A stretch of DNA of 63,603 nucleotides, counting the filler, from Pelomyxa schiedti (Eukaryota > Protista > Evosea): the NCBI GenBank assembly GCA_020536535.1. It is 6 parts of 6 records of this genome, joined end to end, with 100 filler letters (N's around TTAATTAATTAA, not from the genome) between each part and the next. Parts side by side here need not be neighbours in the genome. Positions count along the whole stretch, not along the records: positions 1 to 21,130 come from JAHLWZ010000176.1; 5 more parts are not named here. One strand, given 5' to 3'. The notes below the pieces were generated by a model that saw only the letters and a program-made list of their open reading frames with translations, searched no databases and was not told the DNA's origin. Positions 3 to 21,130 of this stretch are shown here, piece by piece (within the stretch, counting starts at the first letter, position 1; each line of letters opens with the position of its first letter). The translations under genes and the position numbers were made by a program.

Positions 3-3000
3 TGTCTCCGGGAGAAAATTGGTCTGAAAGGCGAGGTCAGTGTTGTCCAACCAGCCACTTCCCAGCTTCCCCCACAGGAACTGGTCCCAGTGAGCACCCA
101 AGAACACCAACCAACACCTGACGATTTGGCCTTTGTCCTGTTTACCAGTGGGACTTCAGGGCAGCCAAAGGCAATACCAACCAGGCACAGAGCTTGGATT
201 TCCCGAATGATAAAAAGTGCACCATTTGTTTTCATGCTGGACAAAGAAGATCCCACTTCCCCAATTTCGACCCGGCCCCGATCCTCCTCCTGTGGTTGCA
301 TGGCCCATTTGTGCTCTCCCTACTTTGACGTTGCCTTATTCGAGCAGACTTTCCCTCTTGTGTTTGGAATGGATATGGGCATTGTTGGTGAGTGGGTTCC
401 AGATTTGCATGTTTTGGCCAACTTGGCTCCGCAAGCCCATTTGACACACATGACAGCAGTTCCAAGTTTCCTGAAAGCACTCACTTCAAGAGAGGAGTTG
501 TGCGCAATTGTGGCAAAGTCGATGAAATNNNNNNNNNNNNNNNNNNNNNNNNNNNNNNNNNNNNNNNNNNNNNNNNNNNNNNNNNNNNNNNNNNNNNNNN
601 NNNNNNNNNNNNNNNNNNNNNNNNNNNNCATGTTTTGGCCAACTTGGCTCCGCAAGCCCATTTGACACACATGACAGCAGTTCCAAGTTTCCTGAAAGCA
701 CTCACTTCAAGAGAGGAGTTGTGCGCAATTGTGGCAAAGTCGATGAAATGCGTTGCCAGTGGTGGTGAAGCTCTTTCTGTTGAATTCGCAGATAAACTTG
801 CTTCCTCGTTTCCGAATGCATCAATTGTAAATGCTTATGGACCTGCTGAGGCAGCATATGTTTACTCTTGTTTTGAATACCACCCTGAGAATAACAGCTT
901 AATGTCAGATGTCGAAAGGGCCACACGGACAGTTCCGATTGGGAAACCCCTCCCCGGTGACGGCGCTATTATCTTGGATGGTGATACTCACCAACCAGTT
1001 CCGTTTGGGGTTCCTGGTGAACTGTGTATCCTCAGCTCATGTCTTACAAAATGTTACTTGAATGACTCTGCCGAAACAGCAAAGCACTTCATTCAGGCGC
1101 CTCCTGAGGTGTGTGCCATGGTTTCTCATGGAGAAACTCTGCCTCCTTTGTTGAGGGAAGACTCAGTGCTGTACCTCACTGGCGATTATGTGAGGTGGAA
1201 TGATAATTTCGAGCTGGAGTACATTCGGAGAACTTGCCAAAACAAAAATCAAGTCAAAGTGCATGGGATGAGGGTGGAAACTGAGGAAATTGCCTTCTAC
1301 ATCCGAATTTACCACTCTTCAATCTCTGACGTCGTTGTGTGTCTGGGCAACGGCAACTTGATTGCCTACATTGAAAATGCCTCCATTCACAACAGTGAAG
1401 AAGAGAACTCACTGCGCCGAGGGTTGCACGGAAGACTGAAGCAGCAGCTTCCTCGATACATGGTTCCGTACTTTTATGTTATCCTTCCAACATTCCCCCA
1501 CNNNNNNNNNNNNNNNNNNNNNNNNNNNNNNNNNNNNNNNNNNNNNNNNNNNNNNNNNNNNNNNNNNNNNNNNNNNNNNNNNNNNNNNNNNNNNNNNNNN
1601 NCAACATTCCCCCACACAACATCGGGGAAGCTTGACCATAAAGCCTTTCCTCCACCGCTTCCAACCAGAGATCTTCCCCTTGACAGTGACCCACAATCTG
1701 TTGGTGGAGACTCCTTTCTTTCCTCTGAGGCCAAGTTCTTACAAGATGAAGTCGAGCAAGTCCTGGGCTTTTCCATCCTGCCCACACAAGACTTGCGAGG
1801 CTTGATTAACTCACTCGCGTTTTATCGGCTGCAGCAAAGAATTCAAATGAAAACTTCAGTCAACATCTCTGCCCACGACTTTGCTGATTACTACACAATA
1901 GAAAGACTTGGGCAATACTTGCAGAAAATAATTAGCCCTCCGGCTAATTCACCTGTAACTCCACCCACGTCTACTTCCCCTAGCATTTCCCGTCTCACAC
2001 TAAACCGTCTCTCACAAACAAGTGAGTCGCACCATCCAACATACCCAAACAGACCCAGATCCAGGTCGTCTTCTTCCCCTAGCTCGCCACGAAACACTCC
2101 GACACATGGGTCAAAGTTCCCGATCGCCATTATTGGCCTTGCTGTAAAATACCCTGGTGCNNNNNNNNNNNNNNNNNNNNNNNNNNNNNNNNNNNNNNNN
2201 NNNNNNNNNNNNNNNNNNNNNNNNNNNNNNNNNNNNNNNNNNNNNNNNNNNNNNNNNNNNTACTTTTATGTTATCCTTCCAACATTCCCCCACACAACAT
2301 CGGGGAAGCTTGACCATAAAGCCTTTCCTCCACCGCTTCCAACCAGAGATCTTCCCCTTGACAGTGACCCACAATCTGTTGGTGGAGACTCCTTTCTTTC
2401 ATCTGAGGCCAAGATGTTGCAAGATGAAGTGGAACAAGTCCTGGGGTTTTCCATCCTGCCCACACAAGACTTGCGAGGCTTGATTAACTCACTCGCGTTT
2501 TATCGGCTGCAGCAAAGAATTCAAAAGAAAACTTCAGTCAACATCTCTGCCCGCGATTTTTCGGATTACTGCACAATAGAAAGACTTGGGCAACACTTGC
2601 AGAAAGTAATGACCCCTGCTGCAGCTCATTCACCTTCCGGAACTCCAACTGCGGCAACAACTTCGCCTGTTGTTTCCCGTCTCTCACGCAACCGTCTCTC
2701 GGTCAGCAGTGAATCACACCATCCAACGTATGCAAACAGACCAAGATCGAGGTGTTCTTCTTCCCCAAGATCTAGAGACACTCCGACAAATGACTCAAAG
2801 TTCCCGATCGCCATTATTGGCCTTGCTGTAAAATACCCTGGTGCCAATTGCCTTGAGGAGCTTTGGGAGATTGTGGTCAACAAAAGAGATACAATAACTC
2901 GATGGGAGCCATCCATACACAACAGAGTCGGTGCTCGAGGGATCATTGCTGACTTTGACTCCTTTGACTACAACTTCTTCAACGTCACGTATCCCAAGTT

Positions 3001-6000
3001 GTATGATCCTCAGGCAATGCTTTTGAATGAAATCAGTTGGTGCGCGCTCGAAGATTCTGGGTACTGCCCCAGCCTTTTGAGGCAGAGGGACACACGTGTC
3101 GGGTATTACACTGCATGCCCAATATCTTCTTATGCCACCACTCACCTGTTCCCGCTTATCCCGCTTCAGGATATGCCCAACTTAACGCAAAGACCTCTGT
3201 TCATCCTCCAGTATAACGAAGCGTTTATGTCAACAGTGACCGCTGCCTCCACAATGAAGTTCAAGGGCCCGATAATCGCCTGTGATGCCGCCTGTGGAGC
3301 GTCTGCCGCTTGCGTGCATCTTGCTTCGCAATCTCTCCGGGCAGGGGAGTGCGACATGGCGATGGTTTCATCCTCTGTCATGCTGTTCCCGCGAGCGAGA
3401 TACGGATATGAACGTGTGCCTGGGCTCATGTCCACAGATGGGAAGGTTGCTCCTTTTGATGAGTCGGCCTCTGNNNNNNNNNNNNNNNNNNNNNNNNNNN
3501 NNNNNNNNNNNNNNNNNNNNNNNNNNNNNNNNNNNNNNNNNNNNNNNNNNNNNNNNNNNNNNNNNNNNNNNNNGACATGGCGATGGTTTCATCCTCTGTC
3601 ATGCTGTTCCCGCGAGCGAGATACGGATATGAACGTGTGCCTGGGCTCATGTCCACAGATGGGAAGGTTGCTCCTTTTGATGAGTCGGCCTCTGGTTTTG
3701 TTCAGTCGGAAGGTGCCGGTTCTATTCTTTTCAAGCCACTGGATAAAGCTTTGTATGATCACGACCACATTTATGCGGTTCTCAGTGGCATTGGTCAGTG
3801 CTCCGATCCGTCGATCTGTGACAACGTGATGGCACTTCATGTTGACATCCTGAAGGACAGCATCGACCGGTGCCACCAAAGTGCCGGAGTGAAATCGAAA
3901 GACGAAATTGGTTATGTGGAGTGCCACGGCGCAGCCACCGCGGTTGGTGATTTCACGGAAATGGCTTCTCTGTGCCGCGCTTTGTCAGAGCCTGGAAAGT
4001 CGCAGTTCTGTGCAATTGGGTCGATCAAAGCGAATATCGGGCACTCATTTCAGGCAGCAGGAATTGCTGCAATCGCAAAGGTGATTTGCATTCTGAACAA
4101 CAACTACATTCCCGGGCTTGTCAATTTTAACCAGGTTCATGGATCTGTGGCTCCATTATTTGCAGATCCGGCTTGTCCCCTCTTCATCCCAAAAGATGGA
4201 TTTGTTCCATCCTCTCCAATTCAGAGAGCAGCGGTGATATGTTCCGCTCCCAGTGGGTCTTATCACATGCTTTTCGAGAAACCACCGGAGCTTCCCCCCA
4301 CAGAGTTAATGAACGAACGAAAGGATTTCCTGATGTTGTTCAGTGCTCTGACAGAGACGGCCGTGGAAGAATACTCCAAGAGAGTTTTGGGTGCCCTCTC
4401 TTCAAAGGATATAAACAGAGTGCTTCTCACCGAAGCGGAGTACACCCTTCAAGTTGGGAGAGAGAGATTCCAAAAACGCAAAGCGGTTGTTGTTTCCTTA
4501 AAGCGTAACGGAGAGAAGGAGACAATTGACACCGTTTTTACTCCACCGAAATCAAAAACAAACGCATCAGCCCAATCACAGCTGGCCACAGACAACCGCA
4601 AAGAACCTCAGGTTGCATTCCTCTTTTCCGGATTTGGAGGAACACACGTTCATGCCATTCGAGAGCTCTATGCTGCATTTCCCACATTCAGACGCAATTT
4701 TGATCGTTGTTCTGTTGCCATTGCCAAATTGATGGACATCGACCCAAGAACGATGTTACTAACAGAAGAAGGAATGGACTGGAAGTCTCAACTTTTTTCG
4801 GCACTTTTATTCAACAGCCTTCAGGTTTGCATCGCTCTCCAGCTGATTGAGTGGGGTATTAAGCCCACCATGGGAATGATTGCACACAGCCTTGGAGAGT
4901 ACGGAGCAGCAGTTGTTTCCGGGGTCATGACTGTTGAAGAATCCCTTTTCTTGTGCCACAAGCGATTCACTTTGCTCGCAACACTTCCGACTGCCAACGT
5001 TCTCATTGTATCGCTGTACCCAGTTCAAAAGATCAAGGAGATTATTGCATCAATTCCAAATTGCTCAATGGAGATTACCGTTATAAACAGCGAGATGCAT
5101 TGCCTTGTTTGTGGAACCCCTGCCGAAATCACAACTCTCCGGGCAAAGATCCACGAAGATACTGCCACTTCGGGATACTTTCTCAATGATTTCAATTCAA
5201 CTCCCTCACACAGTTCAAAGGCGGGCCCAATTCTGGAAACGTTTGCTGATTCCATTTTAACAAGAGTCAAGATGAACAAACCAACAATGCGGTACGTATC
5301 TTGTTCCTCCTGCAAATGGGTCGACCCCACAGAAGCAATCACCCCGCAGCATTACTGCCATCACTTATCGCATCCCATCCTCTTCCCCACTGGAATGGAA
5401 TGTTTGCTTCAGACTTGGAGTGAACAGGAGGCGCCACCACGCTTGGTTATACTGGAAATTGGGACCTCCCTGGCTTCTCATGTGCCCAACATAATTGGGC
5501 CGCGTAATGCCACTTGCATTTCCGTCATGCTCCACAATAAAAATAACAAACTCAACGCAGCCCAGCAGCTGTTGGCCGCTTGCGCCACTCTCTGGGAACA
5601 GGGGTTGGAGTTAGATTGGGATTCTTACCACGTTGGCACCAGCAACCTGTATAAAGTCAGTCTTCCAACTTACCCATGGGAGAGAAAGCAATGCGAACCA
5701 CCCGCGGAGCCTGTTTCAGCAACGGAAACTCTAGCGGACCAAGATAAGTCATTCCTGCAAATACTGCACTCCAAGAGCGGCAAGGCCGATCAAAGCACCG
5801 ACGAGAACGACGCGGTCAGCGGCACAGCGGAGCTATTTTCCAGCAAAGTTCAAGTTCCCAAGGAACTAGTTGCAGTGGTGATGGAATACTGGACCGCACA
5901 CGCTGTTGTGACTCCGGTGGACATGGAGCAGGACAGCACATTCTTCGCCGGAGGTGCCGCCAGCATGAACGCCATGCAAATGCTTTCCTCGCTCAACAAC

Positions 6001-6231
6001 AAGTACCACATTGTGATCCCGGGCAGGGCATTCTTTGCCGACCCGACATTCGAGCACCTCCTCACACTCATTCACCCACTTGTGAACCCTCCACAACAAC
6101 AAGCGCAAACAGCACCAACTCCAACAGACCATACACAAACTTCATCAAACGAAACCAACAACATTCCTCACACCGAAGGCGTTGTAACTGCAACTGCACC
6201 ATCACCATCAACAAACAACGATAACCTCTGA
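3..6231 (+). CDS. Hybrid NRPS-type I PKS (A-T-KS-AT-ACP), copy 1; 5' end outside the window, broken by four assembly gaps
   Basis: A-domain motifs FTSGTSGQPKA, FDVAL, NAYGPAE, GELCI, YLTGD, QVKVHGMRVE, LPRYMVP, TSGKLD. Carrier motif GLINSL. KS motifs IAIIGLAVKYPGA, DPQ, DAACGAS (Cys), ECHGAAT (His), NIGHS (His). AT motifs FLFSGFGG and AHSLGE, post-AT LPTYPWER. Terminal ACP FFAGGAASM, stop at 6231. No introns seen. Confidence 0.92.
1602..2160 (+). other. Alternative paralog/allele of the carrier-domain and linker segment of the NRPS-PKS, scaffolded between gaps
   Basis: Homologous to about 2280-2843 but with substitutions and indels (KIISPPANSPV vs KVMTPAAAHSPS); bounded by 100-N gaps on both sides. 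Confidence 0.75.
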
Positions 6232-6457: not shown

Positions 6458-9087
6458 ATGTCAACCACAACTACTAGTAGTAGTGTAACACTTACTGCTC
6501 CGCGGAAATGGTTCAAGGCTATTTGGAGAACCCCACTTGGTCCCGGGGGCACAATATCCCCGCAGCAGGTGGCGCTGGTCAATTGTGTGTCTGACGAATT
6601 GCAGCTGGTGGTATGTGCATATTCTATGTTCATTTTGTTGTTCACACTAGTTAGACAGGGTTGCATGTGGCTGCTTTGAAGGGGGATGTCGATTGGGCTC
6701 ATGCTCTGCTGGCTGCTGGCGCAAATCCAAATGCAAAGGTTGATTATTCTATTCTTTATTGCGCCCAGTATTGTGGCGTGGTTTGTAAGAGCGTTTCACT
6801 GTAGCTGGGGCAACCTGGATCCGATCGTCTAACAGTTACCACCGCCACCGCCACTGCAACTGCAATTGGGTCCCCTGTCAAGTCGGTAAGTTCTCTATTC
6901 TCTATTATCCTTTGTATTGATCCACTTCAGAATTTGGTATGCCTTTTATTTGGTCACACATAATCTAAACCTTGTGTTTATTCTTTGAACTGTTGCTCCA
7001 ACCGGCCTTCGTTTCCATGTAGTTTGTAAGGAATTCCTTTCTTCCTTCATTGGTTTTAATACTGTGAACAGATAGTGTGTATTTTTTTGAGTGATATTTA
7101 TTTCTCACCTACTCTTTCTTGTGCCAATTTCATATCTAGCTGGTGTGTCTCTTTATTTGTTTCTGCATTTTAACTGTATCACAGATTGTATGTCACTTTT
7201 CAATATAATCTTCCTTTTGCTCATTTCTTTTCATGTTGAAGGGCAAACGCCCAATAGTGGTGTGTACGTTCTAATAGCAAGTTTCTTCTGATTTTTCAAA
7301 GCTTGTATGTACACTTGATATGGAAAAAACCTTCTAACCTGCTTTCTGTTCCTTTGGCTTATGATAAACGTAGCCGGTGTGCAGTTTGTCTTTTGGATGT
7401 TTACACTAACTCACACTCAAAAACAATCCTTTCTTTTGATCAAAGGGAGTATGTAATAATCAGTTTATCATATCTTATTCATTTAAACTAGGCTGTATGT
7501 ACATTTAACTGTCTTCTCATTCTTACATTTTGTTGATGTTCCATTTCTTGAACTTCTAGCTTGTATGTAGTTTGATGTGCAATTTACTGAATAACTTTCT
7601 TTAGCCGGTAGTTTCTTTAATCTCCTGCATTTCTTTCTTATTCAAATTGATCAATGTATATTCTTTCCCAGGGTGATGTATGTCCCCCTTTTATTTTCCC
7701 CTTTGAAAATTTAATCTTCCTGTACAGACTCCATTGCATCTTGCCACACTGCAAGGCAACACAGGTGTTGTTATTGTACTCCTTGCCAGTCCCAATGTAG
7801 ATATCTTCATAAAGGTATCGTGTTTGTATACACCTACTGACTTACTCCGCCACAGAATTCTAAAAATCAATCCGCTATGGACCGCACTACCCTTGCGGAC
7901 ATCAAAACCCTGTTTAGGCAGCAGCGCGTACTTCCTAATGTTGGAATTACATTGCCACAGCTGGACGATGCAGTCAGAAATGAAATGGCTGTTTTAACGG
8001 CCGCACAAAGGTATTACCCTGAAGGGGTGTCACCAACCCATGTTCTGTCCGGCAAGGTGGAATCTGGGGTCAACCGAATGGCCCAAATTGCCGGAACAAC
8101 AATCGAAGCTGCCGCGGTTTCTATTGTGATTACTCATGCATCCAATGCCATGAATACACTCAATGCTCAGCGCACCACATACCAAGCTGAAGTACAAAGA
8201 GAGCAAGCTCAGCTCGTTCAATCAACTCAAAACAAACAACAAGCCGAGGTTGCAGTGAAACTCCGCGAAGCCGAACTGATGCAAGCGCAGCAGAACCTTC
8301 AACAAGCATCGCAGGTAGAATCCGCGAACCGGCAGAGTCTAACCACAGCCCAAGGAATCCTCCAAGCAGCAAACAACAGGATCCAGCTAGTCACACAAAC
8401 CAAACAAATCTATGAGCAGAGATACACCCGAGTCACGGCGGTAATCGCCACTCTGCTGGATAAGGTCCGGTCTCGGAACCTCTTCCGCTTGACAGTGGAT
8501 GATGTTTCCGCATTGCTACGTGATGTAGGCCTTGTACATCATGTCAGCCGGTTCCAGACCGCGAGAATTAGTGGCGGCTCACTTTTGTCACTGGATAGGT
8601 CAACCATGACATCACTTGGGGTAATACAGAGGTATGACCAGGACCTTCTGTTGCACTCTCGCAAGATGATACGCCAACGTGGGGAGATACACGCGAAGCC
8701 ATCATCACCAGCATGCTGGAGTGCACAACAGGTGCTTCTTATATTTTATATTACTATCAAAAAAAAAACAATATTTATTATTATAAATGAAATTATAAAA
8801 TAACAATAAAGAGTTAGGTTTTCATCTTACATTTACCACTACAATTTGATAAGGTTCTGTCATGGATGAAGGGAGAGCTGGAATGGAGCCAGGGGGAAAT
8901 TGCTGTGTTCCAGGCAAAGCTGCCCAATGTCGATGGAATTTCGTTGTTGTACCTGGAGCAGGGTGAGATAAATGGACTTTCTACAGAGGCCGGGGGGACC
9001 CTCCCTCAGGGCAGTGTACTATCACTGTGGTCAGCAATACAGCAAGCTGAGGCGCTTGTCTATGATCCCACACAGTACACATCATGA
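6458..9087 (+). CDS. Ankyrin-repeat / coiled-coil / tandem SAM-domain protein, multi-exon
   Basis: Phase-0 exons: 6458-6610; 6655-6738 (TGLHVAALKG...GANPNAK); 6805-6885; the micro-exon train; 7728-7814 (TPLHLATLQG); 7856-8731 (Q/A-rich coiled coil, then SAM-like LTVDDVSALLRDVGL...ISGGSLLSL..LGV); 8854-9087 (second SAM, WSAQQ|VLSWM...VDGISLLYL). All introns GT-AG. Confidence 0.85.
6931..7677 (+). other. Array of 13 predicted micro-exons (ten of 3 nt) separated by 38-86 nt introns
   Basis: Repeated AG|NNN|GT(A/G) units at 6931-36 AATTTG, 7023-25 TTT, 7072-74 ATA, 7140-42 CTG, 7185-87 ATT, 7242-59 (or 7258-63), 7302-04 CTT, 7374-76 CCG, 7446-48 GGA, 7492-94 GCT, 7560-62 CTT, 7605-07 CCG, 7672-77 GGTGAT. 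Donors are mostly GTATGT or GTGTGT. Confidence 0.8.
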
Positions 9088-9134: not shown

Positions 9135-9652
9135 TTAATTGCCAGTGTGTTTTCGTTCGTTTTCAAAGTGGCCAATGATGCATTTACCAGGAGGGTTTGA
9201 GAGTGTCTTGACCTTGTTCCCCTTCTTCGTGTAAACTGTCACTTTGGCACCAGAGAATTCACCCTCACACACGAGGATGTGACCATCAAGGTATGTGAGG
9301 GAAGCCACTTCTGGTGAATGGATGGTCCACAAGGGACCTTCCCTCAGGTGCTCGAGGTTCATAAGGCTGAAGGATTCCAGGCAGCTGATGACAAACAGGT
9401 TATCACTGACTGGTGCAATGCACGTTGGGTTGATGTGTGGTATCTCCCCTATCTTCTCACCAGTGGTTGTCTCAATGAAGCAAAGGTAACCGGTGTTGCT
9501 GCAACACAGGGGAAGGACAAGTCCTGCAGCAAGGAATGACCCCGGGGAAGTCAATGTGTGCTTTTCCTCTTTGGGCAGTCTCCACGTCATTCTGGTGAAT
9601 GTGGGAGAAGACTCATCAACTGGTTTTGCAATGTTGAAGCGTAGAAGTGTTG
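9135..9652 (-). CDS. Hypothetical beta-strand-rich protein, 5' end lost in a gap; paralog of 16831-17556
   Basis: ORF MTWRLPKEEKHTLTSPGSFLAAG is highly similar at DNA and protein level to 16831-17286. Confidence 0.7.
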
Positions 9653-9752
9653 NNNNNNNNNNNNNNNNNNNNNNNNNNNNNNNNNNNNNNNNNNNNNNNN
9701 NNNNNNNNNNNNNNNNNNNNNNNNNNNNNNNNNNNNNNNNNNNNNNNNNNNN

Positions 9753-10265
9753 AGGATATAAACAGAGTGCTTCTCACCGAAGCGGAGTACACCCTTCAAG
9801 TTGGGAGAGAGAGATTCCAAAAACGCAAAGCGGTTGTTGTTTCCTTAAAGCGTAACGGAGAGAAGGAGACAATCGACACCGTTTTTACTCCACCGAAATC
9901 AAAAACAAACGCATTAACCCAATCACAGCTGGCCACAGACAACAGCAAAGAACCCCAGGTTGCATTCCTCTTTTCCGGATTCGGGGGAACACACGTGCAT
10001 GCCATTCGAGAGCTCTATGCTGCATTTCCCACATTCAGACGCAATTTTGATCGTTGTTCTGTTGCCATTGCCAAATTGATGGACATAGATCCAAGAACGA
10101 TGCTGCAAACGGAAGAAGGAATGGACTGGAAGTCCCAACTTTTCTCCGCACTTTTATTCAACAGCCTTCAGGTTTGTGTTGCTCTCCAGCTGATTGAGTG
10201 GGGGATTAAACCCACCATGGGAATGATTGCACACAGCCTTGGTGAATATGGAGCAGCGGTTGTTT
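9753..10265 (+). CDS. Fragment of an NRPS-PKS paralog (KS-AT linker and AT N-terminus), gap-bounded
   Basis: Near-identical to about 4405-4918 with private variants (NALTQSQL); contains FLFSGFGG and AHSLGE. Confidence 0.8.
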
Positions 10266-10365
10266 NNNNNNNNNNNNNNNNNNNNNNNNNNNNNNNNNNN
10301 NNNNNNNNNNNNNNNNNNNNNNNNNNNNNNNNNNNNNNNNNNNNNNNNNNNNNNNNNNNNNNNNN

Positions 10366-12443
10366 CGGCTTGTCCCCTCTTCATCCCAAAAGATGGATTT
10401 GTTCCATCCTCTCCAATTCAGAGAGCAGCGGTGATATGTTCCGCTCCCAGTGGGTCTTATCACATGCTTTTCGAGAAACCACCGGAACTTCCCCCCACAG
10501 AGTTAATGAATGAACGCAAAGATTTCCTGATGTTGTTCAGTGCTCTGACAGAGACGGCCGTTGAAGAATACTCCAAGAGAGTTTTGGGAACCCTCTCTTC
10601 AAAGGATATAAACAGAGTGCTTCTCACCGAAGCGGAGTACACCCTTCAAGTTGGAAGAGAGAGATTCCAAAAACGCAGAGCAGTTGTTGTTCGCTTAAAG
10701 CGGAACGGGGAGAAGGATACAATTGACAGCGTTTTTGCACCACCGAAATCAAAAACAAACGCATCAGCCCAATCACAGCTGGCCACAGACAACAGCAAAG
10801 AACCTCAGATTGCATTCCTCTTTTCAGGCTTCGGGGGAACACACGTTCATGCCATTCGAGAGCTCTATGCTGCATTTCCCACATTCAGACGCAATTTTGA
10901 TCGTTGCTCTATTTCCATTGCCAAACTGATGGACATAGATCCAAGAACTATGCTGCAAACGGAAGAAGGGATGGACTGGAAGTCCCAACTTTTTTCCGCA
11001 CTTTTATTCAACAGCCTTCAGGTTTGTGTTGCTCTCCAGCTGATTGAGTGGGGGATTAAACCCACCATGGGAATGATTGCACACAGCCTTGGTGAATATG
11101 GAGCAGCGGTTGTTTCCGGGGTCATGACTGTTGAAGAATCCCTTTTCTTGTGCCACAAGCGATTCACTTTGCTCGCAACACTTCCCGCTGCTGCCGTTCT
11201 CTTTGTGTCGCTGTACCCAGTTCAAAAGATCAAGGAGATTATTGCATCAATTCCAAATTGCTCAATGGAGATTACTGTTATCAACAGTGAGATGCATTGC
11301 CTTGTGTGCGGAACTCCTGATGAAATCACAACCCTCCGGGCAAAGATCCATGAAGATACCGCCACTTCGGGATACTTTCTCAATGACTTCAATTCAACTC
11401 CATCACACAGTTCAAGGGCGGGCCCAATTCTGGAAACGTTTGCTGATTCCATTTTAACAAGAGTCAAGATGAACAAACCGACAATACGGTACGTATCTTG
11501 TTCCTCCTGCAAATGGGTAGACTCCACAGAAGCAACCACCCCGCAGCATTACTGCCATCACTTATCGCATCCCATCCTTTTCCCCACTGGAATGGAATGT
11601 TTGCTTCAGACTTGGAGTGAACAAGAGGCGCCACCACGCTTGGTCATCCTGGAAATCGGAACCTCCCTGGCATCTCACGTCACCCAAATCATCGGTCAGC
11701 GGAATGCCACTTGCATTCCGGCCATGCTCCACAATAAAAACAACAAACTCAACGCAGCCCAGCAGCTGTTGGCGGCTGCGGCCACTCTGTGGGAACAGGG
11801 AGCGGAGTTAGACTGGGAATCTTACCACGTTGGCACCAGGAACCTGTATAAAGTCAGCCTTCCAACCTACCCATGGGAGAGGAAGCAATGCGAACCACCC
11901 GCGGAGCCGGGTTCGGCGGCGGAAACCCTAGCGGACCAAGATAAGTCATTCCTGCAAATATTGCACTCCAAGAGCGGCAAGTCCGATCAAAGTTCCGACG
12001 AGAACGACGCGGCCAGCGGCACAGCGGAGCTATTTTCCGGCAAAGCTCAGGTGCCCAAGGAACTAGTTGCAGCGGTGATGGAATACTGGACCGCACACGC
12101 TGTTGTGACTCCGGCGGACATGCGGGAAGACAGCACATTCTTTGCCGGAGGTGCCGCCAGCATGAACGCCATGCAAATGCTTTCCTCGCTCAACAACAAG
12201 TACCACATCGTGATCCCGGGAAGGGTATTCTTTGCGGAACCCACATTCGAGCACCTCCTCACACTCATTCACCCACTTGTTCAACAACAACAACCGCAGC
12301 AACAAGTTCAACAACAGCTGTTGCGGGCGCAACAAACAACACCAACAGACCAATCAAACGAAACCAACAACAGTTCTCACACCGAACGCGTTGCGACTGC
12401 GCCGGCACCGTCATCATCAACAAACAACAACAACAACCTCTGA
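10366..12443 (+). CDS. NRPS-PKS copy 2, 3' part (end of KS, AT, ACP)
   Basis: Paralog of about 4168-6231 with substitutions and a different Q-rich tail; 3' flank differs from copy 1. Confidence 0.9.
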
Positions 12444-12591
12444 GTGTGGCACCACACCAGTGTACCAAATACGCCTAAATTTTTAGTTTTTTTAAAACAC
12501 AACATTCAAGGAAAGCAAACCTTCGTGGCCATGAAGGTTCTTTACATCATAGTTTATTATGTTGGGGTTTGTTCGGAGGTGCCTTTGGCAG

Positions 12592-12934
12592 TTACCCAGC
12601 ACGCAACCTATCGCAAGTTAAGAAGAGGTAAAATTCATCAATTTAAATTGGCGTGGTTTATTCATTTATTCATGATTAATTAAATCGGAGGAGTTAGTTC
12701 ATGATTGTGTGTTTACTACCTCACTACGAGGTGGAGTGTTGACTCCTTCTGGATGTCATAGTCAGCGATGGTGCGTCCGTCCTCGAGCTGCTTTCCCGCG
12801 AATATTATCCTCTGGTCGGCCCACAGGATGCCCAACTTGTTTTGGAGCTGTCTCTTGACCTGCTCTATCGTGTCATTGGCTTCCACGTTCACGTTCACAA
12901 CTTCTCCCTGCAACGTCTTTACGAATAGAAGCAT
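12592..12934 (-). CDS. Divergent 76-aa ubiquitin-like protein ending RLRAG, two exons
   Basis: Exon 1 12934-12720 ([10 protein letters not shown]...[12 protein letters not shown]...KESTLHLVV), GT-AG intron 12719-12608, exon 2 12607-12592 completing R-L-R-A-G-stop. Spliced length is exactly 76 aa. Confidence 0.85.
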
Positions 12935-13002
12935 ACCCCAAATTTTTTTTTTTGTTTTGGTTTTGGGGAACGTGTTGTTGTGAAAGATACCCATTCCTTC
13001 CT

Positions 13003-13106
13003 TCACAACAAGAAGGAGAAATGGGTTCCAAGCATGAATTGAGGGCCGCCACCACCAAAATGCAGGTGCAGCAACTTGGCACCGGTCTCGTTGTCGGTCA
13101 CCAGGA
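13003..13106 (-). CDS. C-terminal fragment of an orphan-family protein (gap-truncated)
   Basis: Reads [33 protein letters not shown], resembling the end of 23641-25365 (VSDERSGAHVITF...PFSFVP*). Confidence 0.55.
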
Positions 13107-13206
13107 NNNNNNNNNNNNNNNNNNNNNNNNNNNNNNNNNNNNNNNNNNNNNNNNNNNNNNNNNNNNNNNNNNNNNNNNNNNNNNNNNNNNNNNNNNNNNN
13201 NNNNNN

Positions 13207-13910
13207 TCCACAATAAAAACAACAAACTCAACGCAGCCCAGCAGCTGTTGGCGGCTGCGGCCACTCTGTGGGAACAGGGAGCGGAGTTAGACTGGGAATC
13301 TTACCACGTTGGCACCAGGAACCTGTACAAAGTCAGCCTCCCAACTTACCCATGGGAGAGAAAGCAATGCGAACCACCCGCGGAGCCGGGTTCAGCAGCG
13401 GAAACCCTAGCGGACCAAGATAAGTCATTCCTGCAGATTCTGCACTCCAAGAGCGGCAAGTCCGATCAAAGTTCCGACGAGAACGACGCGGCCAGCGGCA
13501 CAGCGGAGCTATTTTCCAGCAAAGCTCAAGTTCCCAAGGAACTAGTTGCAGCGGTGATGGAATACTGGACCGCACACGCTGTTGTGACTCCGGCGGACAT
13601 GCGGGAGGACAGCACATTCTTTGCCGGAGGTGCCGCCAGCATGAACGCCATGCAAATGCTTTCCTCGCTCAACAACAAGTACCACATCGTGATCCCGGGC
13701 AGGGCATTCTTTGCCGACCCGACATTCGAGCACCTCCTCACACTCGTTCACCCACTTGTGAACCCTCCGCAAGAACAACCGCGGCAACAAGTTCAACAAC
13801 ACCTACAAGCACAAACAGCACCAAACGAAGCCAACAACAGTCCTCCCCCCGAAGGCGTTGCAATTGCACCGGCACCATCATCATCATCACCAACAAACAA
13901 CAACCTCTGA
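13207..13910 (+). CDS. NRPS-PKS copy 3, 3' part (post-AT linker and ACP)
   Basis: LPTYPWER and FFAGGAASM; third distinct C-terminal tail and third distinct downstream flank. Confidence 0.88.
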
Positions 13911-14094: not shown

Positions 14095-15498
14095 TCAGCA
14101 CAACAAGTCTTGAACGTGGAGGGCGAATGTGGACCTGTTGTGTGGACTGTCCATCTGGAAAACAACCGTGCCTGTTAATGCATCGACGACTTGCACAGCA
14201 GTCTGCCCTGTGGTGGTGCTGCACTTGAGGAACAGTCCACCACCGCTTTCGATTTGGCTGTACTTGATCCCAGTGTGGGTGGCCTGGGCCTCCTCAGATC
14301 GATTGGTGAGGTCATACACCTTGAGCACTGCAAGTGGGTATATCTCGGTATCCATGCGGAGCACACTGACGTGTGTGTCATCCACTACGGAAACAACACT
14401 CCCTAAAGGGAACTCTGTGCTCTCACCCGTCCTGGTGTCTCTTATGAAACGGCCATCGACGATGCACTCTTTCCAGTTGCCTGGGAACACAAGCCTCTTC
14501 ATTCCCTGGCTGCATTCAAGTGATTCCTTGGCGAAAACCACCTGCACAGTCCCAGTCTCAAAGCTTTTCTTCAAGTCGATCTGCATGTAATTCAGCTTGA
14601 AGGAGTGGAAGCCAATTGACAGGACATCGCCCTCCTCGCACCCCGTAGCCTGTGGGCACCTTGTGAACTGGAACACGATTACGTTGTTGAATCCATCCCT
14701 CGGCCTCAGCCTCACGGCCCTCCCGCCGGTGCAGTCCACCCTAGTCTTCCCCTTCGGCCTCATTCCTCCTTGTTGCTCACCCATCCCGCCGGGACTCACC
14801 CCCTCTTCCTCCTCATCCCGAACCACCACCACCTTCCACATCACCAGATTCCCAAGCGAGAACGCCACGACCCACCTCCCGTTTGCAATGATATTCTGGG
14901 GCAAGATGCCACTCACCAGGTCCTGCCCCGTCACCCCCTCAGGCTCCCTCATCTCTCCCACAACCCTGTCCACGCCTCGGTCTCCTCCTCCTCCACCTCC
15001 GGCCTCCTCGCCCTCGCCGCCGCTCCTCCTCCTTGTGCAGCTTTCCGTCGTGTCGACCACACATGGCTTCCCGTGCCAGGGCTTCACCACGGCCGTGGCC
15101 TCGTCGACCCACCCGACCCACGTGACCCTCCACCAGATGCTGCTCGCCACCACGTCGCACGTGGTAAGCGTCGTCGTGACGCCGCCGGTGAAGGACACGC
15201 CGAAGCACACGGGCCTGGCCCGGCTGCCGTCGCGGGAACATGCCGGCTCCATCATGATGTCCTCGAATTTCTCCGGCAGGGGCATGCGGGTGTGGATGGC
15301 GACCATCTTGGCGGTGCATGTGACCCAGCGGCGGCCGATCTCGGCAGACACGAGGGGCCCGGGGAGCCACGACGCGGGGCACGAGGAACGACCACCTGTG
15401 GTGGTTGTTGTGGTGATGGTGGTGGCGGCCACGGCTATGGCAACGAACTGATCTCGCGAATCGAGCACCACGCGTGATGTCGGACGAGATGCTTGCAT
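14095..15498 (-). CDS. Expanded orphan-family protein (N-terminal RxQxxA motif, beta-rich C-terminus)
   Basis: 467-aa intronless ORF; clear paralog of 20045-21130 (CFGVSFTGGVTT, YMQIDLKKSFETG, ESGGGLFLKC). Confidence 0.8.
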   Translation of the reverse strand: MQASRPTSRVVLDSRDQFVAIAVAATTITTTTTTGGRSSCPASWLPGPLVSAEIGRRWVTCTAKMVAIHTRMPLPEKFEDIMMEPACSRDGSRARPVCFGVSFTGGVTTTLTTCDVVASSIWWRVTWVGWVDEATAVVKPWHGKPCVVDTTESCTRRRSGGEGEEAGGGGGGDRGVDRVVGEMREPEGVTGQDLVSGILPQNIIANGRWVVAFSLGNLVMWKVVVVRDEEEEGVSPGGMGEQQGGMRPKGKTRVDCTGGRAVRLRPRDGFNNVIVFQFTRCPQATGCEEGDVLSIGFHSFKLNYMQIDLKKSFETGTVQVVFAKESLECSQGMKRLVFPGNWKECIVDGRFIRDTRTGESTEFPLGSVVSVVDDTHVSVLRMDTEIYPLAVLKVYDLTNRSEEAQATHTGIKYSQIESGGGLFLKCSTTTGQTAVQVVDALTGTVVFQMDSPHNRSTFALHVQDLLC

Positions 15499-15600
15499 TC
15501 GTGGTTGGTTAGAAACGGTTTGATCGGATGTGGGTTACTGTAACTCCATCAGTGATTCGAACCGGCCTTGTGCTAAGGCACCTCTCCAGACCAGCGGCCT

Positions 15601-16809
15601 ATGTTCCGCCGAAGACTCGGGCAACAAGAAACTCCAACGATAGCAGCAGCAGCTATCGCCACACCATCAACTTCGCCTCCAAAAACACCGACGACGGCCA
15701 GATCACAACTGATGGCCCTGCTTTGTGCCCCAGTCGTCGAATCACGAAGGGAAACGGAGGGGGAATCAACTCGCACAGCGGGTGCTGCTGTCCCACAATC
15801 CCTGATGAGGTGGGCACAATCGACGACTGCGTTCAGGGCGTGGGCTGAGGAATGGGTGCTCAGGCCCTGCGACGAGGTTGCGTTCGCACTCCCAATCAAG
15901 GAGCACTACTTGTTCGTGAGTGTGTCGCAAACCCTGGGAATAGTCAGGCACTGTTGGTTCACAACCAGCTCTGAAGTGATTGGCTGTCTGGGACACAACA
16001 GGGTTCTGCTTAAGCCCCGCAACACTTACGCACAATCTTTGATTGCGTACACGATCGCAGAAGTTGGCGACAATGACGGAGAGGCTCCAATCCCAGTTGA
16101 GATTCTGCAGCCACTCGATTGCAATCGCCTGTTTTGCAACCAGAAGTGGATGGCTGGGTTCCTCAACCATGATGAAATTGGTATTTGGAGAGTGTGTGGA
16201 GGTGTTGTAATGGAGCCTGGGCACTGTCTTGATTGGCCTGAGGTGGGGAGGCTTGATTTTCCACCCCTTTGCAATGACATCATCATGTTATTTCAGTTCT
16301 CTCCATGCAGTGAGATTGGTATGGGATGGCGTGTTACTGTATGTGACGTGCCAGCAAGCTTCAACGATGGGGATTTGGTCGCAAAGTCAAAGTTGCTGTG
16401 CAATGAATCTCTCTGCGGTGTTATCCTTGGGCCTGATGGCTATGTGTACACTTTGCACTATGACTTCAATGCAGCATTCTATTTTGTTGTGGATGAGACA
16501 ACCGGCACCAAACTTGTTAGGTTTCCACCACACTCCTGTGCAAAGACGGTTGGCAACAGTAATTTGCTCGTAAGTGATCATCGGCAATTTGCCACCTACC
16601 ACACTGGAAACCTTACCTCAGCACCGACACTTTGTGTTTGTTGCACGTGGGCATCCCCCTCACTCAGCCGCCAGTCGTGCCTCATTGCATCAACCACGTA
16701 CAATGACGTAAGTTCCAGCGAAATCACTTTTGCAGTGTATGATGCAGCCACAGGGTTCCATCACGGTGACTTCAACATTCACTTTGACCCCTCACTTTTT
16801 TTCTCTTGA
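15601..16809 (+). CDS. Expanded orphan-family protein
   Basis: 402-aa ORF; paralog of 18461-19953 (RAWAEEWVLRP, YLFVSVS.TLG, CN.KW, HTGNL, DAATGF). Confidence 0.8.
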   Translation: MFRRRLGQQETPTIAAAAIATPSTSPPKTPTTARSQLMALLCAPVVESRRETEGESTRTAGAAVPQSLMRWAQSTTAFRAWAEEWVLRPCDEVAFALPIKEHYLFVSVSQTLGIVRHCWFTTSSEVIGCLGHNRVLLKPRNTYAQSLIAYTIAEVGDNDGEAPIPVEILQPLDCNRLFCNQKWMAGFLNHDEIGIWRVCGGVVMEPGHCLDWPEVGRLDFPPLCNDIIMLFQFSPCSEIGMGWRVTVCDVPASFNDGDLVAKSKLLCNESLCGVILGPDGYVYTLHYDFNAAFYFVVDETTGTKLVRFPPHSCAKTVGNSNLLVSDHRQFATYHTGNLTSAPTLCVCCTWASPSLSRQSCLIASTTYNDVSSSEITFAVYDAATGFHHGDFNIHFDPSLFFS

Positions 16810-16830
16810 CTACAAAGAAACACAATGTGG

Positions 16831-17556
16831 CTAATCCAAAGGATGGTCTTGTTCGTTTTCAAAGTGGCCAATGATGCATTTTCCAGGAGGGTTTGTGAGT
16901 GTCTTGACCTTGTTCCCCTTCCTCGTGTAAACTGTCACTTTGGCACCAGAGAATTCACCCTCACCCACGAGGATGTGACCATCAACGTATCTCAGGCATG
17001 CCACTTCTGGTGAATAAATCGTCCACAAGGGACCGTCCCCCAAGTGTTCGAGGTTCAGAAGGCTGAAGGATTCCAGGCATCCGAGCACAAAGAGGTTATC
17101 ACTGACTGGTGCAATGCACGTTGGCCTGCTGTGCAGTATCTCGCCTATTTTCTCACCAGTGGTTGTGTCAATGAAGCAAAGGTAACCAGTATTGCTGCAC
17201 CACAGCGGAAGGACCAGCCCGGCAGCAAGGAATGACCCCGGGGAAGTCAACGTGTGCTTTTCCTCATCGGGCAGTTTCCATGTCATTCTGGTGAAGGTTG
17301 GGGACTCACCAACTTGTCCTGAAGTGATGTCGAAGCGTAGAAGTGTTGCTGCATTCTTGCCGAAACAGCAGACCGAGACTTCATTCCCTTCACTTCACAT
17401 CTTGGGTCAGGTCACAGAAAAATATGAGGGATACAGTTACGGAATGTTCTGGTCCACGTATGTCACGCTTCCCCACAATGTTCGGTGATAGTATCCAGGT
17501 GGGATTCCGTTCTCTTGAAGGAGCTCTTTCAAGCTTACTTGGTAATCAATATGCAT
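16831..17556 (-). CDS. Hypothetical protein, one intron near 17440-17393; paralog of 9135-9652
   Basis: MHIDYQV...QNIP|EGNEVSVCCF...MTWKLPDEEKH joined in frame by a GT-AG intron; start codon uncertain. Confidence 0.65.
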
Positions 17557-17697
17557 CTCTTCTGAGCTGGCACATAAGATGCTGTTGTCGAATTGTGACT
17601 GAAAAAGAAGAGGAAACAACTCACACACTATCGGGACTGATCATCACCGATTCTCAGGATCCACCTTGAACAAGTGTCTATTATTAATGGGAAGGGA

Positions 17698-18276
17698 TCA
17701 ATTCTCATGAGGAAAAACGAAAGAGAGATTCAATCTTACGCAACACACACCTGGCCTTTTCACAAGTTCCACAATCCTCCACTCCCCTTTTTCTTCCTCC
17801 TCTTGATAATTGTTGTCGTCGTTCCTCACCCTCGTGACAGCCATGATGTGCGACCTGCCGTCGTTCATTGTATTTTTCACCCAACTCCAAACCATCACAA
17901 CCGATTTCGGCCTCCCAAGGTACTCGTGCGACCAAGGCGAGTGAGCTTCCAGCATCCAAAAGATGTGCCTGGCCACATGTGACCCGCGCATCGCGTCCCT
18001 CATTCCCTGAGGGGTCCTGGCCCCGCACGTGGATCCACAGCTGCACAAAATGGCAAACACCCTCCCCCTGTTGTTGTTGCTGTGCATCAACCACTGGCCA
18101 TTGTGACCGACGCCACCCGCAATTCTCTTGCTGCGCAGGGCACTGGGATCTCTTTGTGGATGGAGGTGTGCAGTTCCTTCTGGAAAGAACGGTGGGCACT
18201 CTGGCGACGGGGGCTTGGCCGGCGGTTGGTCGTGGTCCTGTGTTACGTTTTTCTGCGACGACCCCGTTGATCCCAT
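17698..18276 (-). CDS. Hypothetical protein with possible N-myristoylation signal and the family motif
   Basis: Begins MGSTGS; internal RGRVFAILCSCGSTCGARTP...VARHIFW; 3' end may be spliced. Confidence 0.55.
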   Translation of the reverse strand: MGSTGSSQKNVTQDHDQPPAKPPSPECPPFFPEGTAHLHPQRDPSALRSKRIAGGVGHNGQWLMHSNNNRGRVFAILCSCGSTCGARTPQGMRDAMRGSHVARHIFWMLEAHSPWSHEYLGRPKSVVMVWSWVKNTMNDGRSHIMAVTRVRNDDNNYQEEEEKGEWRIVELVKRPGVCCVRLNLSFVFPHEN

Positions 18277-18460
18277 CACAAAGAGATCTTTTCTTTTATC
18301 AAGAGAGATTAGAGTTGACAACCAACGCGAACCCAATGACGGGTTTATCTATTGTCCCTTGAGATCACTACAATTAAGGGATCCCTTGGAATTCCAGATC
18401 ATCCTGAAGCTCAGGGGTATCACCTTCGTGGAAGGCCAATAATTGTTTGATCAAGTGCCG

Positions 18461-19953
18461 ATGACCACGCCAACGTTGACGGCCAAGTCACAAGCGATGG
18501 CGGTTTGTTGCGCGGCCGTCGTAGCTTTGAGGGGGACAGCAACAACGACAACAAGAAAAAGGGCAGATCCGACGCCAGGAACCCACTTCGAATCAGGTTC
18601 CCACCAACCGCGTAGTCGTGTTGGTGCTGAATGCGCCCCGTCAATGGTTGTGTGGGCACAGTCCCCGTTGTTGGTCAGGGCGTGGGCCGAGGACTGGGTG
18701 CTCAGGCCCGAGAGGGAAGCTGTGTTCGGCCTCCCAATCAGTCCCTCGCAAGGGAGGGACAGTGTGTCCAGCTACCTCTTCGTGAGNNNNNNNNNNNNNN
18801 NNNNNNNNNNNNNNNNNNNNNNNNNNNNNNNNNNNNNNNNNNNNNNNNNNNNNNNNNNNNNNNNNNNNNNNNNNNNNNNNNNNNNNCGTTGTTGGTCAGG
18901 GCGTGGGCCGAGGACTGGGTGCTCAGGCCCGAGAGGGAAGCTGTGTTCGGCCTCCCAATCAGTCCCTCGCAAGGGAGGGACAGTGTGTCCAGCTACCTCT
19001 TCGTGAGTGTGTCGCCCACGCTGGGTGTGGTCGACCACTGCTGGCTGTCATGTGGGCCGATGGAGGGCGTGTGCGGGTGCATTGGCGCGGGCAGGCTGCT
19101 GGCCACCGCGAGGCCGAAGAGGTTTTTCCATACGACGGAGAGAGACCACGTCATCGGGTACGCCAAGTCATGGAACGACGGCGAGGAGGACCCACAAGGG
19201 GGGGGGAGCAACTGCAATCGGCAGCGCTGGGGAAAGATGAGCGTGCTATCTTCGGTGACATGCAACCGAAAGTGGATTGTTGCAACAACCCCCCCGGAAG
19301 AGAGGAATATCAGAATTTGCAAGGTGGTGTGTGGCGTCCCTGTGGAGCCAAATGTGTTTGTGCCGTGCAACTCTGCTGGGGTATTGAACATTTTACTTGC
19401 ATCCTGGAGTGATGACGTCGCGATACTATTGGCTGTGCTTCCAGTGGTGGGTGCCAATGATGACGAAAAGAAAAGGGATTGCGCAATACTCGTTGACTTG
19501 GATGCCAGTTTCAACAGAAAGGAGTTGATTGTCATCTCGGTGATTGAGTGCTGCACCCACCTTCCAACTCCAACAAGAGGAATCACTTGGACTCCCGAGG
19601 GGTCCCTTCGCGTGATGCAATTCAGCTACAATGACATGTCATACTCCCTTGTCGATCCAGCCACAGGCCACACAACGTGGCACTTCGGAGTCACCGAGGA
19701 CGTGTATCCCATCGGCAAGACTCACCTGTTAGTTTGCAAACGGCAGTGCGAGTACTTCCAGGTTTTCCACACCGGAAACCTCGGCACGCCGTCGCTCTGT
19801 GTGCCATGCCACTGGGCACGGCCAAGCTCCAGGTCAGGCCTCATCCTGTCAACAACAGCACACGTCAACAGGGGGGCAGATCTCCCAAGAATAGAGTTCT
19901 CGCTCCACGATGGTGCCACTGGATTTCTCATTGGAATGTTCGCAACTCCCTGA
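18461..19953 (+). CDS. Expanded orphan-family protein (interrupted by a gap with duplicated flanks)
   Basis: Paralog of 15601-16809; about 18667-18786 is repeated after the gap. Confidence 0.8.
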
Positions 19954-20044
19954 AGTACTTTTTTTTTCACAATCCTGTTTCACAACAAAAACCAAATCAC
20001 CAAACCTCAGTATTCTGTGAACCCTGGTGCGGTAACTTATGGTT

Positions 20045-21130
20045 TTAGGAGAGGTCTTGAACATGAAGGGTGAAATTGGCCGCGTCACACCTCTTCATTT
20101 GGAAAACTACAACACCTGTGAATGCATCAACAACTTGCACTGTTGGCATGGTTGTGGTGCACTTCAGGAACAGGCCACCCCCAGATTCAGTCTCCTTGTA
20201 CTTAATCCCACTGTGTATGGCTTGAGCCTCAGAACAGCAAGATGCAGAATTCTCCAAGTTATACACCTCAAAGACTGCAAGTGGAAACACGTTGTGGTCT
20301 AAGCGGACAACACCAACATGGGTGTCGTCCACAGCATAGACAACACTCTCAGGAGGAAATTCCATGTGTTTCTCACCTGTGCTGATGTCTCTTATGAAGC
20401 TACCATCGACGATGCACTCCTTTCCTTGTTGAAGGCCTCCTGGAAACACCAACCTCTTCATTCCATGGCTGCATTCAATGGAGTTCTGGGAAAATATTAC
20501 CTGCAGAGTTCCAGTCTCAAAAGTTTTCTTCAGATCAACCTGCATGTAATCCAGCCTGCCGTTTCTGAACAGCCCAATCGACAGTACATCACCCACCTCG
20601 CTGCCCTTATCCCGTGGGCACCTCGTGAACTGCCACACACCAACATCACTGTAAGCCTTGCCTGGACCCACTCCCACAACCTTCTCGCTTTTATAGTCCA
20701 CCGTAGTCCTCCTCCTTGCTCCGCCAAAGTCATCACCCAGTGGCACCACCTTCCACATGAACAGGCTCCCATATGAGAGTGCCACCACCCACCTCCTGTT
20801 TGCAATCAAGGTTGCTGAAGCGTCGTCCCAGTCCCAACGAATCCCCAGCAGCTGAGACGTCACAACCTCCCCATTTCTCGTTGGAAGCAGCACAGCATGT
20901 GGGTTGGTGTACAGGCTCTTTTCAACTGCAGTGACGTCATCGACCCAGGCCACGCACATGACGGGCCACCCGCCCGGCACGAGGTGGCACGCCACGGGCC
21001 TCGTGGTCACGCCGCCGGTGAAGGACACCCCGAAGCACACCGCGCAGTGGGCCGCGCCCCCTGGCTCGTCGTCGTCCCGGCCGAACTCGGGGAGGCCCCC
21101 GCCGTCGCGGTCGTGGCCGGGCAGCCCGCG
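20045..21130 (-). CDS. Expanded orphan-family protein, 5' truncated at contig end
   Basis: Paralog of 14095-15498. Confidence 0.8.
   Translation of the reverse strand, partial: RGLPGHDRDGGGLPEFGRDDDEPGGAAHCAVCFGVSFTGGVTTRPVACHLVPGGWPVMCVAWVDDVTAVEKSLYTNPHAVLLPTRNGEVVTSQLLGIRWDWDDASATLIANRRWVVALSYGSLFMWKVVPLGDDFGGARRRTTVDYKSEKVVGVGPGKAYSDVGVWQFTRCPRDKGSEVGDVLSIGLFRNGRLDYMQVDLKKTFETGTLQVIFSQNSIECSHGMKRLVFPGGLQQGKECIVDGSFIRDISTGEKHMEFPPESVVYAVDDTHVGVVRLDHNVFPLAVFEVYNLENSASCCSEAQAIHSGIKYKETESGGGLFLKCTTTMPTVQVVDAFTGVVVFQMKRCDAANFTLHVQDLS

Follow-up and report, generated by a model that had tools for sequence, protein, structure and literature searches.

Codon-sized exons and variable binding surfaces in described systems

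Single-codon exons very seldom occur in long uninterrupted runs, and a literature search gave one close precedent, the nank (NACHT-ANK) NLRs of Tuber melanosporum (Iotti et al. 2012). Published summaries describe these genes as an expanded family with tens of 3-bp exons that are alternatively spliced (PMC4986451, PMC9815663, PMC10197012, PMC3689799, PMC13449251). The locus described here lies in the window, which is the whole 63,603-nt stretch of Pelomyxa schiedti DNA that was analysed; among the top search results, no paper connected micro-exons with Pelomyxa or Archamoebae. As far as the summaries of Tuber go, the likeness is in an expanded ankyrin family, tens of codon-sized exons, and a presumed recognition domain. 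Ten such exons are RNA-supported in the window gene (Pelo_2107), with up to 23 per gene and ~190 in total predicted. The Pelomyxa family is not a member of the nank family, as it is without NACHT or another NLR nucleotide-binding domain; a domain search found no NACHT domain in Pelo_2107, Pelo_6819, or the downstream exons read from the paralogs. Its proteins carry SAM/U-box or kinase tails behind an N-terminal module of two repeats, and the lineage is Amoebozoa, not Ascomycota. Whereas skipping is reported in the Tuber summaries, the Pelomyxa RNA path (depth 4.2) includes all units and shows intron retention only. Unit duplication and fast codon change come from Pelomyxa, and the same summaries are silent on how the Tuber arrays originated. 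Because the amoeba genes are without NACHT, this unannotated family is probably a second, independent case, a convergent form of something rare but already described. That ankyrin proteins of two supergroups have such exons suggests that the lineages converged on coding one residue per exon as a means of varying a binding surface.

The original prediction took the micro-exon gene (MEG) proteins of schistosomes as precedent, but the Tuber family is closer. MEGs share runs of small symmetric exons and fast protein evolution, and they differ in being secreted, with signal peptides, and in consisting mostly of micro-exons (PMC4350168). In Pelo_2107, the train makes up 60 of 1575 coding bases and lies inside a folded domain; a hydropathy scan, which is not a signal-peptide predictor, showed no hydrophobic N-terminus (top 19-residue hydropathy 1.5). 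The Pelomyxa family is not a MEG family. Designed ankyrin repeat proteins (DARPins) have the same cap-repeat-repeat-cap fold, and their variable positions are in the beta-turn loops and the following helices (PMC10484509). They are engineered, whereas the Pelomyxa loop is natural, encoded exon by exon, and a putative binder. The same difference applies to LoopDARPins (attributed to Schilling, 2014), which are reportedly a design with a long randomised central loop. The LRR-ROCO and NB-ARC-TPR genes of Ectocarpus (Zambounis 2012, as summarised in PMC10197012 and PMC13449251) are candidate receptors that are diversified as exon-sized units are rearranged. The unit there is a whole repeat, whereas the unit in Pelomyxa is one residue.

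The micro-exon train of Pelo_2107

The train lies in Pelo_2107 (KAH3766022.1) on contig C176, a gene with an ankyrin module, a coiled coil, and two SAM domains. Its 19 exons, joined by script, gave a single open frame of 524 residues in the order cap, ankyrin 1, 47-residue insert, ankyrin 2, cap, coiled coil, SAM, and SAM-like domain. All exons are on the + strand. The first coding exon (6458-6610, 51 codons) encodes the N-terminal ankyrin cap; its frame is open from the ATG as far as a GTATGT donor, and the start agrees with the public model. The exon of ankyrin repeat 1 (6655-6738, 84 nt, phase 0) lies outside the RNA contigs and matches Pfam Ank at E 9e-6 over profile positions 5-31 of 33. 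The exon of ankyrin repeat 2 (7728-7814, 87 nt) starts with TPLH, matches Pfam Ank at E 1e-4 over positions 4-30, and is covered by RNA over 7728-7767. Both matches are above the Pfam cut-off and the T-x-L-H motif is present, so the product was classed as an ankyrin repeat protein. The long exon at 7856-8731 encodes the C-terminal cap, the coiled coil, and the first SAM domain (Pfam SAM_1 and SAM_2), with RNA contigs over 7890-8300. The last exon (8854-9087), read by translation, contains the stop and ends as in the public model; it has no Pfam match by itself, and the assignment of a second SAM-like domain is from homology to paralogs with two SAM matches. A word-based protein search with the long exon returned no match, and the full protein probably exceeded the length limit of that search; a search with the ankyrin region returned generic ankyrin proteins only.

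The 47-residue insert consists of 27 residues from an 81-nt exon and 20 from the train. The 81-nt Thr/Ala-rich exon (6805-6885) starts the loop and has no counterpart in the paralogs examined. Its donor at 6886 was used in RNA of two runs (X2 and X3), its acceptor at 6804 is a prediction, and one RNA contig starts at 6783, within the intron before it. An alternative acceptor at 6768 was rejected, as it brings an in-frame stop or requires introns of 20-24 nt.

The original prediction placed 13 micro-exons, ten of them of a single codon, between this exon and ankyrin repeat 2. All 13 were found at the predicted positions with canonical AG/GT ends, in phase 0 and with lengths in multiples of three, and 10 of the 13 are 3 nt long. 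The first is a 6-nt exon (N-L, 6931-6936) joined in RNA from 6885 to 6931 in three contigs from two runs. It is followed by single codons for F (7023-7025), I (7072-7074), L (7140-7142), and I (7185-7187), the last of which corresponds to the fixed first unit of the paralogs. The sixth unit had been left ambiguous between GKRPIV and WC. The 18-nt GKRPIV exon (7242-7259) aligned directly in RNA, which rules out WC, and it corresponds to a 9-nt G-x-x unit in the paralogs. Single codons for L (7302-7304), P (7374-7376), G (7446-7448), A (7492-7494), L (7560-7562), and P (7605-7607) come next, and the train ends with a 6-nt exon (G-D, 7672-7677) that is the conserved last unit of the family and also stands before T-x-L-H at 12 further sites. 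The introns, 42-86 nt long, are of the ordinary short GT-AG type. The lower end of the 38-86 nt spacing given earlier belonged to the WC parse. At ~6971, where a decayed 14th unit was suspected, an AG is lacking and the RNA does not include the unit.

The motif HAG-NNN-GTRYG was counted in 6886-7727 and in 5000 dinucleotide shuffles. It occurred 8 times, against a shuffled mean of 0.05 and maximum of 2, and 0 times on the opposite strand; when exon lengths of 1-9 were tested, clear enrichment was found at 3 and 6 only.

Four runs from one study, which also produced the genome, contain the stretch: three are single-cell RNA and one is unlabelled. In run X2, contig 3 (189 nt, depth 4.2) extends from 6862-6885 to 7728-7767 and carries all 13 units in genomic order between the flanking exons, as predicted for a micro-exon array. 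Its layout is 6862-6885, 18 letters, 7242-7259, 9 letters, 7492-7562, 9 letters, and 7728-7767, and the 36 letters without a direct placement are the predicted units in order, except for TTG instead of CTG at 7140-7142 (both Leu). Since X2 contigs depart from the DNA at a few further sites, this is most simply read as a synonymous allele difference; it may also be RNA editing. Contig 3 retains intron 7495-7559, which puts it out of frame and leaves the A-L joint unspliced. For the A exon, the acceptor was therefore seen in use and the donor was not; for the L exon at 7560-7562, the donor was seen in use and the acceptor was not. With this frameshifting intron retained, a complete in-frame mRNA was not seen. 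Two more contigs (X2 and X3) have 6886-6930 spliced out and the next intron kept. The RNA confirms that the train of the window gene is spliced, and the train is a compact test of how the spliceosome handles ten or more consecutive 3-nt exons.

That the train is an artefact, with splice-like motifs arising by chance in a single AT-rich intron or through an assembly error, is scarcely credible. The assembly does come from amplified single cells, with duplicated and gapped pieces nearby, and the public model has most of the stretch as one intron. The RNA letters, however, equal the predicted units in order, which refutes an artefact for the window gene; the dinucleotide shuffle test is also against it, the unlabelled run (probably the DNA source) has the stretch in one unchanged contig, and the layout is repeated in 20 modules. 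In the public model, intron 6886-6930 is treated as exon and 6936 is spliced straight to 7728, so that the train is missing; the models examined for Pelo_6819, Pelo_4154, and Pelo_16958 likewise miss the trains of the family.

Combinatorial skipping of the units would give many loop variants per gene and per cell, i.e., a receptor repertoire made by splicing, and is compatible with genomic diversification of the loop. It is considered possible but doubtful. Every unit is in phase 0 and a multiple of three, and skipping is reported in the summaries for the Tuber nank genes (PMC4986451, PMC9815663), but the lone spliced path here is unbranched, with 13/13 units included and only introns retained. 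No unit-skipping path was found in the RNA contigs, which, being assembled, lose rare variants and give one path at depth 4.2. If that path is one molecule and skipping is independent between units, the upper 95% bound on average skipping is ~20% per unit. This is far from the equally likely patterns implied by the earlier figure of 2^13 splice patterns.

In organisms whose introns are short, it is the intron and not the exon that is recognised in splicing, so that tiny exons are feasible and retention is the common failure. RNA with retention only fits such intron definition. The short canonical introns of the train are probably removed singly in this way, with inclusion of the units as the default and retention as the usual failure. 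Skipping could add diversity, above all in young trains, and would be unnecessary.

Paralogs and growth of the trains

A second ankyrin gene with a train was found on contig C1120 by its tandem 3-nt exon pattern, and two further patterns led to many more. The genome scan for similar arrays and paralogs gave at least 20 ankyrin modules with a train in the same loop. The family set comprised 20 modules, of which three are partial and one is decaying; the paralog trains are motif predictions, and RNA support is for the window gene only. The units were parsed automatically with loose acceptor criteria, since a trained acceptor profile proved too strict, and the parse contains a few nested-AG errors. 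In the 20 loops (20.7 kb), HAG-n-GTRYG occurred 175 times at n = 3, 20 times at 6, and 9 times at 9, at most 5 times at every other length up to 12, and at most 6 times on the antisense strand. About 190 single-codon exons were predicted, from 1 (C396 and C753) to 23 (C1120) per module. Their residues are mainly G (36), I (33), Y (19), L (18), and F (15), with ~10 each of S, D, and N, and the 23-codon train is rich in Tyr, Gly, Asn, Ile, and Ser. The main subfamily is built on a fixed frame that runs I, 9-nt G-x-x unit, variable run, G-(I/T)-E, G-D, and then T-x-L-H; the window gene keeps three of its elements (I, the G-K unit, and G-D).

Genome-wide, tandem 3-nt patterns were found at ankyrin trains and otherwise at GT microsatellites, a few chance matches, and unread loci. 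The triple-unit pattern was confined to ankyrin trains and one unread locus; trains are therefore not widespread among Pelomyxa genes. The G-D or tandem-unit patterns match ~20 additional loci, some of which may be chance or assembly duplicates, and family size is estimated at 30-40 modules. Coiled-coil, SAM, SAM, and in some cases U-box tails were found on C176, C328, C530, and C1120, and coiled-coil and protein-kinase tails on C361, C417, and C753. A search for transcript-derived fragments of the paralogs returned two genome models only. In a metagenome scan for a G-D exon followed by T-x-L-H, 11 matches were obtained and 0 had a train. Separately, ENA metagenome ERZ27237193 contains a related ankyrin-coil-SAM-SAM-U-box gene of an unknown eukaryote. 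In this single case, one candidate 3-nt exon (CAT, 142-144 of 1-330) occupies the position of the trains, right before a T-A-L-H exon, with duplicated intron sequence flanking it on both sides.

Several other loci were noted during the scan. A tandem 3-nt exon pattern at C601:49959-50119 (+ strand) may be a further train. C2488:167-290 is a truncated 91% copy of the first ankyrin exon of the window gene, with small deletions and without a train. C753 and C1242 have near-identical ankyrin-kinase loci with two predicted loop units only and are probably alleles or an assembly duplicate.

The ankyrin exons of Pelo_2107 leave out the ends of the Pfam Ank profile, and from the positions covered (5-31 and 4-30), the train takes the place of the beta-hairpin that links the repeats. 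Fold prediction was run on the public model of Pelo_4154, a paralog of 134 residues with a short loop (mean pLDDT 76). The predicted structure matches two-repeat DARPins with a TM of ~0.74 and has the junction in the central loop. With loops of 1 to 23 single codons among the paralogs, the ankyrin fold probably tolerates changes in loop length, a point also in favour of skipping.

Within-train intron identity is 92-93% in C161 and C219, ~73% in C1120, C418, and C530, and 62% in the window train (56% when shuffled). The high values mean that the repeating unit is an intron plus a codon, and the low value means that the window train is old; in line with this age, Tandem Repeats Finder found no array in it. 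As judged from these identities in the assembly, the young trains have been shown to grow by tandem duplication of intron-plus-codon units, and they reveal how single-codon arrays arise. Phase-0 symmetry by itself is no argument for skipping, because such duplication needs it equally.

For a nearest-neighbour test, young units were paired on half of the flanking sites and scored on the held-out half. Neighbours differed at 32-52% of codon positions 1-2, 6-17% of position 3, and 7-14% of held-out flanks, with 0 synonymous and 14-22 non-synonymous codon changes; these codon-versus-flank figures are indicative and not formal tests, as the units share ancestry and are hence non-independent. Tandem paralogs on C328 differ at 4/168 sites in ankyrin exons, 36/840 in introns, and 4/8 single-codon exons (P ~0.01), and two of the four codon changes bring the neighbouring acceptor sequence along, as unit swapping predicts. 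The gene at C530:196-199 kb has a decaying copy at C530:204577-206900 with frameshifts and ~ten units lost. At an intron distance like that of C328, this copy has 0/20 codon differences; it is a weak control, with ~1 change expected, and fits selection better than targeted mutation. Within the limits of these indicative statistics, the comparisons show the unit codons changing faster than the flanking introns, and genomic diversification of the loop is supported.

These figures also bear on whether tandem duplication spread short introns neutrally or selfishly through a surface loop that tolerates them and has no recognition role. In favour are the clear origin of the units by tandem duplication, the 7.43 introns per gene of this intron-rich genome (PMC8887013), and the tolerance of hairpin loops for insertions. 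Such spread is nonetheless improbable: the trains occur only in a single loop of a single module, the first two codon positions diverge several-fold faster than the flanks while synonymous changes number 0, and stops are few (one among ~190 units, ~8 expected from base composition). At C219 (~12200, minus strand), an 18-unit single-codon train has one TGA among CGA and GGA siblings. Either the gene is a pseudogene, or the assembly is wrong here, or the unit has to be skipped; skipping would be favoured if the gene is functional, but not under the first two readings.

Proposed role of the loop, and other genes in the window

The best explanation, held with moderate confidence, is that the family loop is written one residue per exon, is diversified by unit recombination and selection, and forms a variable ligand-binding finger. 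On this reading, the proteins of the Pelomyxa family are cytosolic, Pelo_2107 is among the old members, and the central beta-hairpin loop of their small ankyrin module (two repeats between two caps) is encoded in this form. Each unit would add three coding bases in phase 0, so that unequal crossing-over or conversion between near-identical introns could insert, delete, or swap single residues without a frameshift, and new loop sequences would be favoured by selection. The finger would be coupled to SAM/U-box (ubiquitination) or kinase outputs. Of the earlier idea of a receptor with a splice-diversified binding loop, the diversified loop is strongly supported by the gene family, and diversification by skipping is possible but doubtful, given that all units were included and introns only were retained. 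The window train itself, old and rich in L, I, P, and G, may now be a fixed linker.

An immune role of the loop is a guess by analogy. Its most plausible targets would be microbes or their proteins in the cytosol, which a cytosolic binder could hand to a ubiquitin ligase or kinase; behind the guess stand the domain architecture, the likeness to Tuber, and the bacteria and methanogen that P. schiedti houses as endosymbionts in its cytosol (PMC10579272). The family is a hidden candidate recognition system in such an amoeba. It is conceivable, though on present evidence unlikely, that young members such as that of C1120 are both genomically reshuffled and combinatorially spliced. Each amoeba would then possess a repertoire of loop-DARPin sensors of natural origin, connected to ubiquitin ligases and kinases, for anticipatory recognition in the cytosol, and this system would have evolved independently of that of the truffle.

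Other genes were noted in the window. Several intronless reading frames of 330-470 residues lie at 14095-21040 on both strands, in two or more related copies; two of them were scanned, with 0 Pfam matches. At 12719-13264 (minus strand), a ubiquitin-like domain (Pfam E 5e-22) adjoins an assembly gap. At 90-6231 (+ strand), with more copies at 9647-13910, adenylation, ketosynthase, acyltransferase, and carrier domains stand in a row. This is an NRPS/PKS hybrid gene in an anaerobic amoeba, present as several near-identical pieces split by 100-N gaps.
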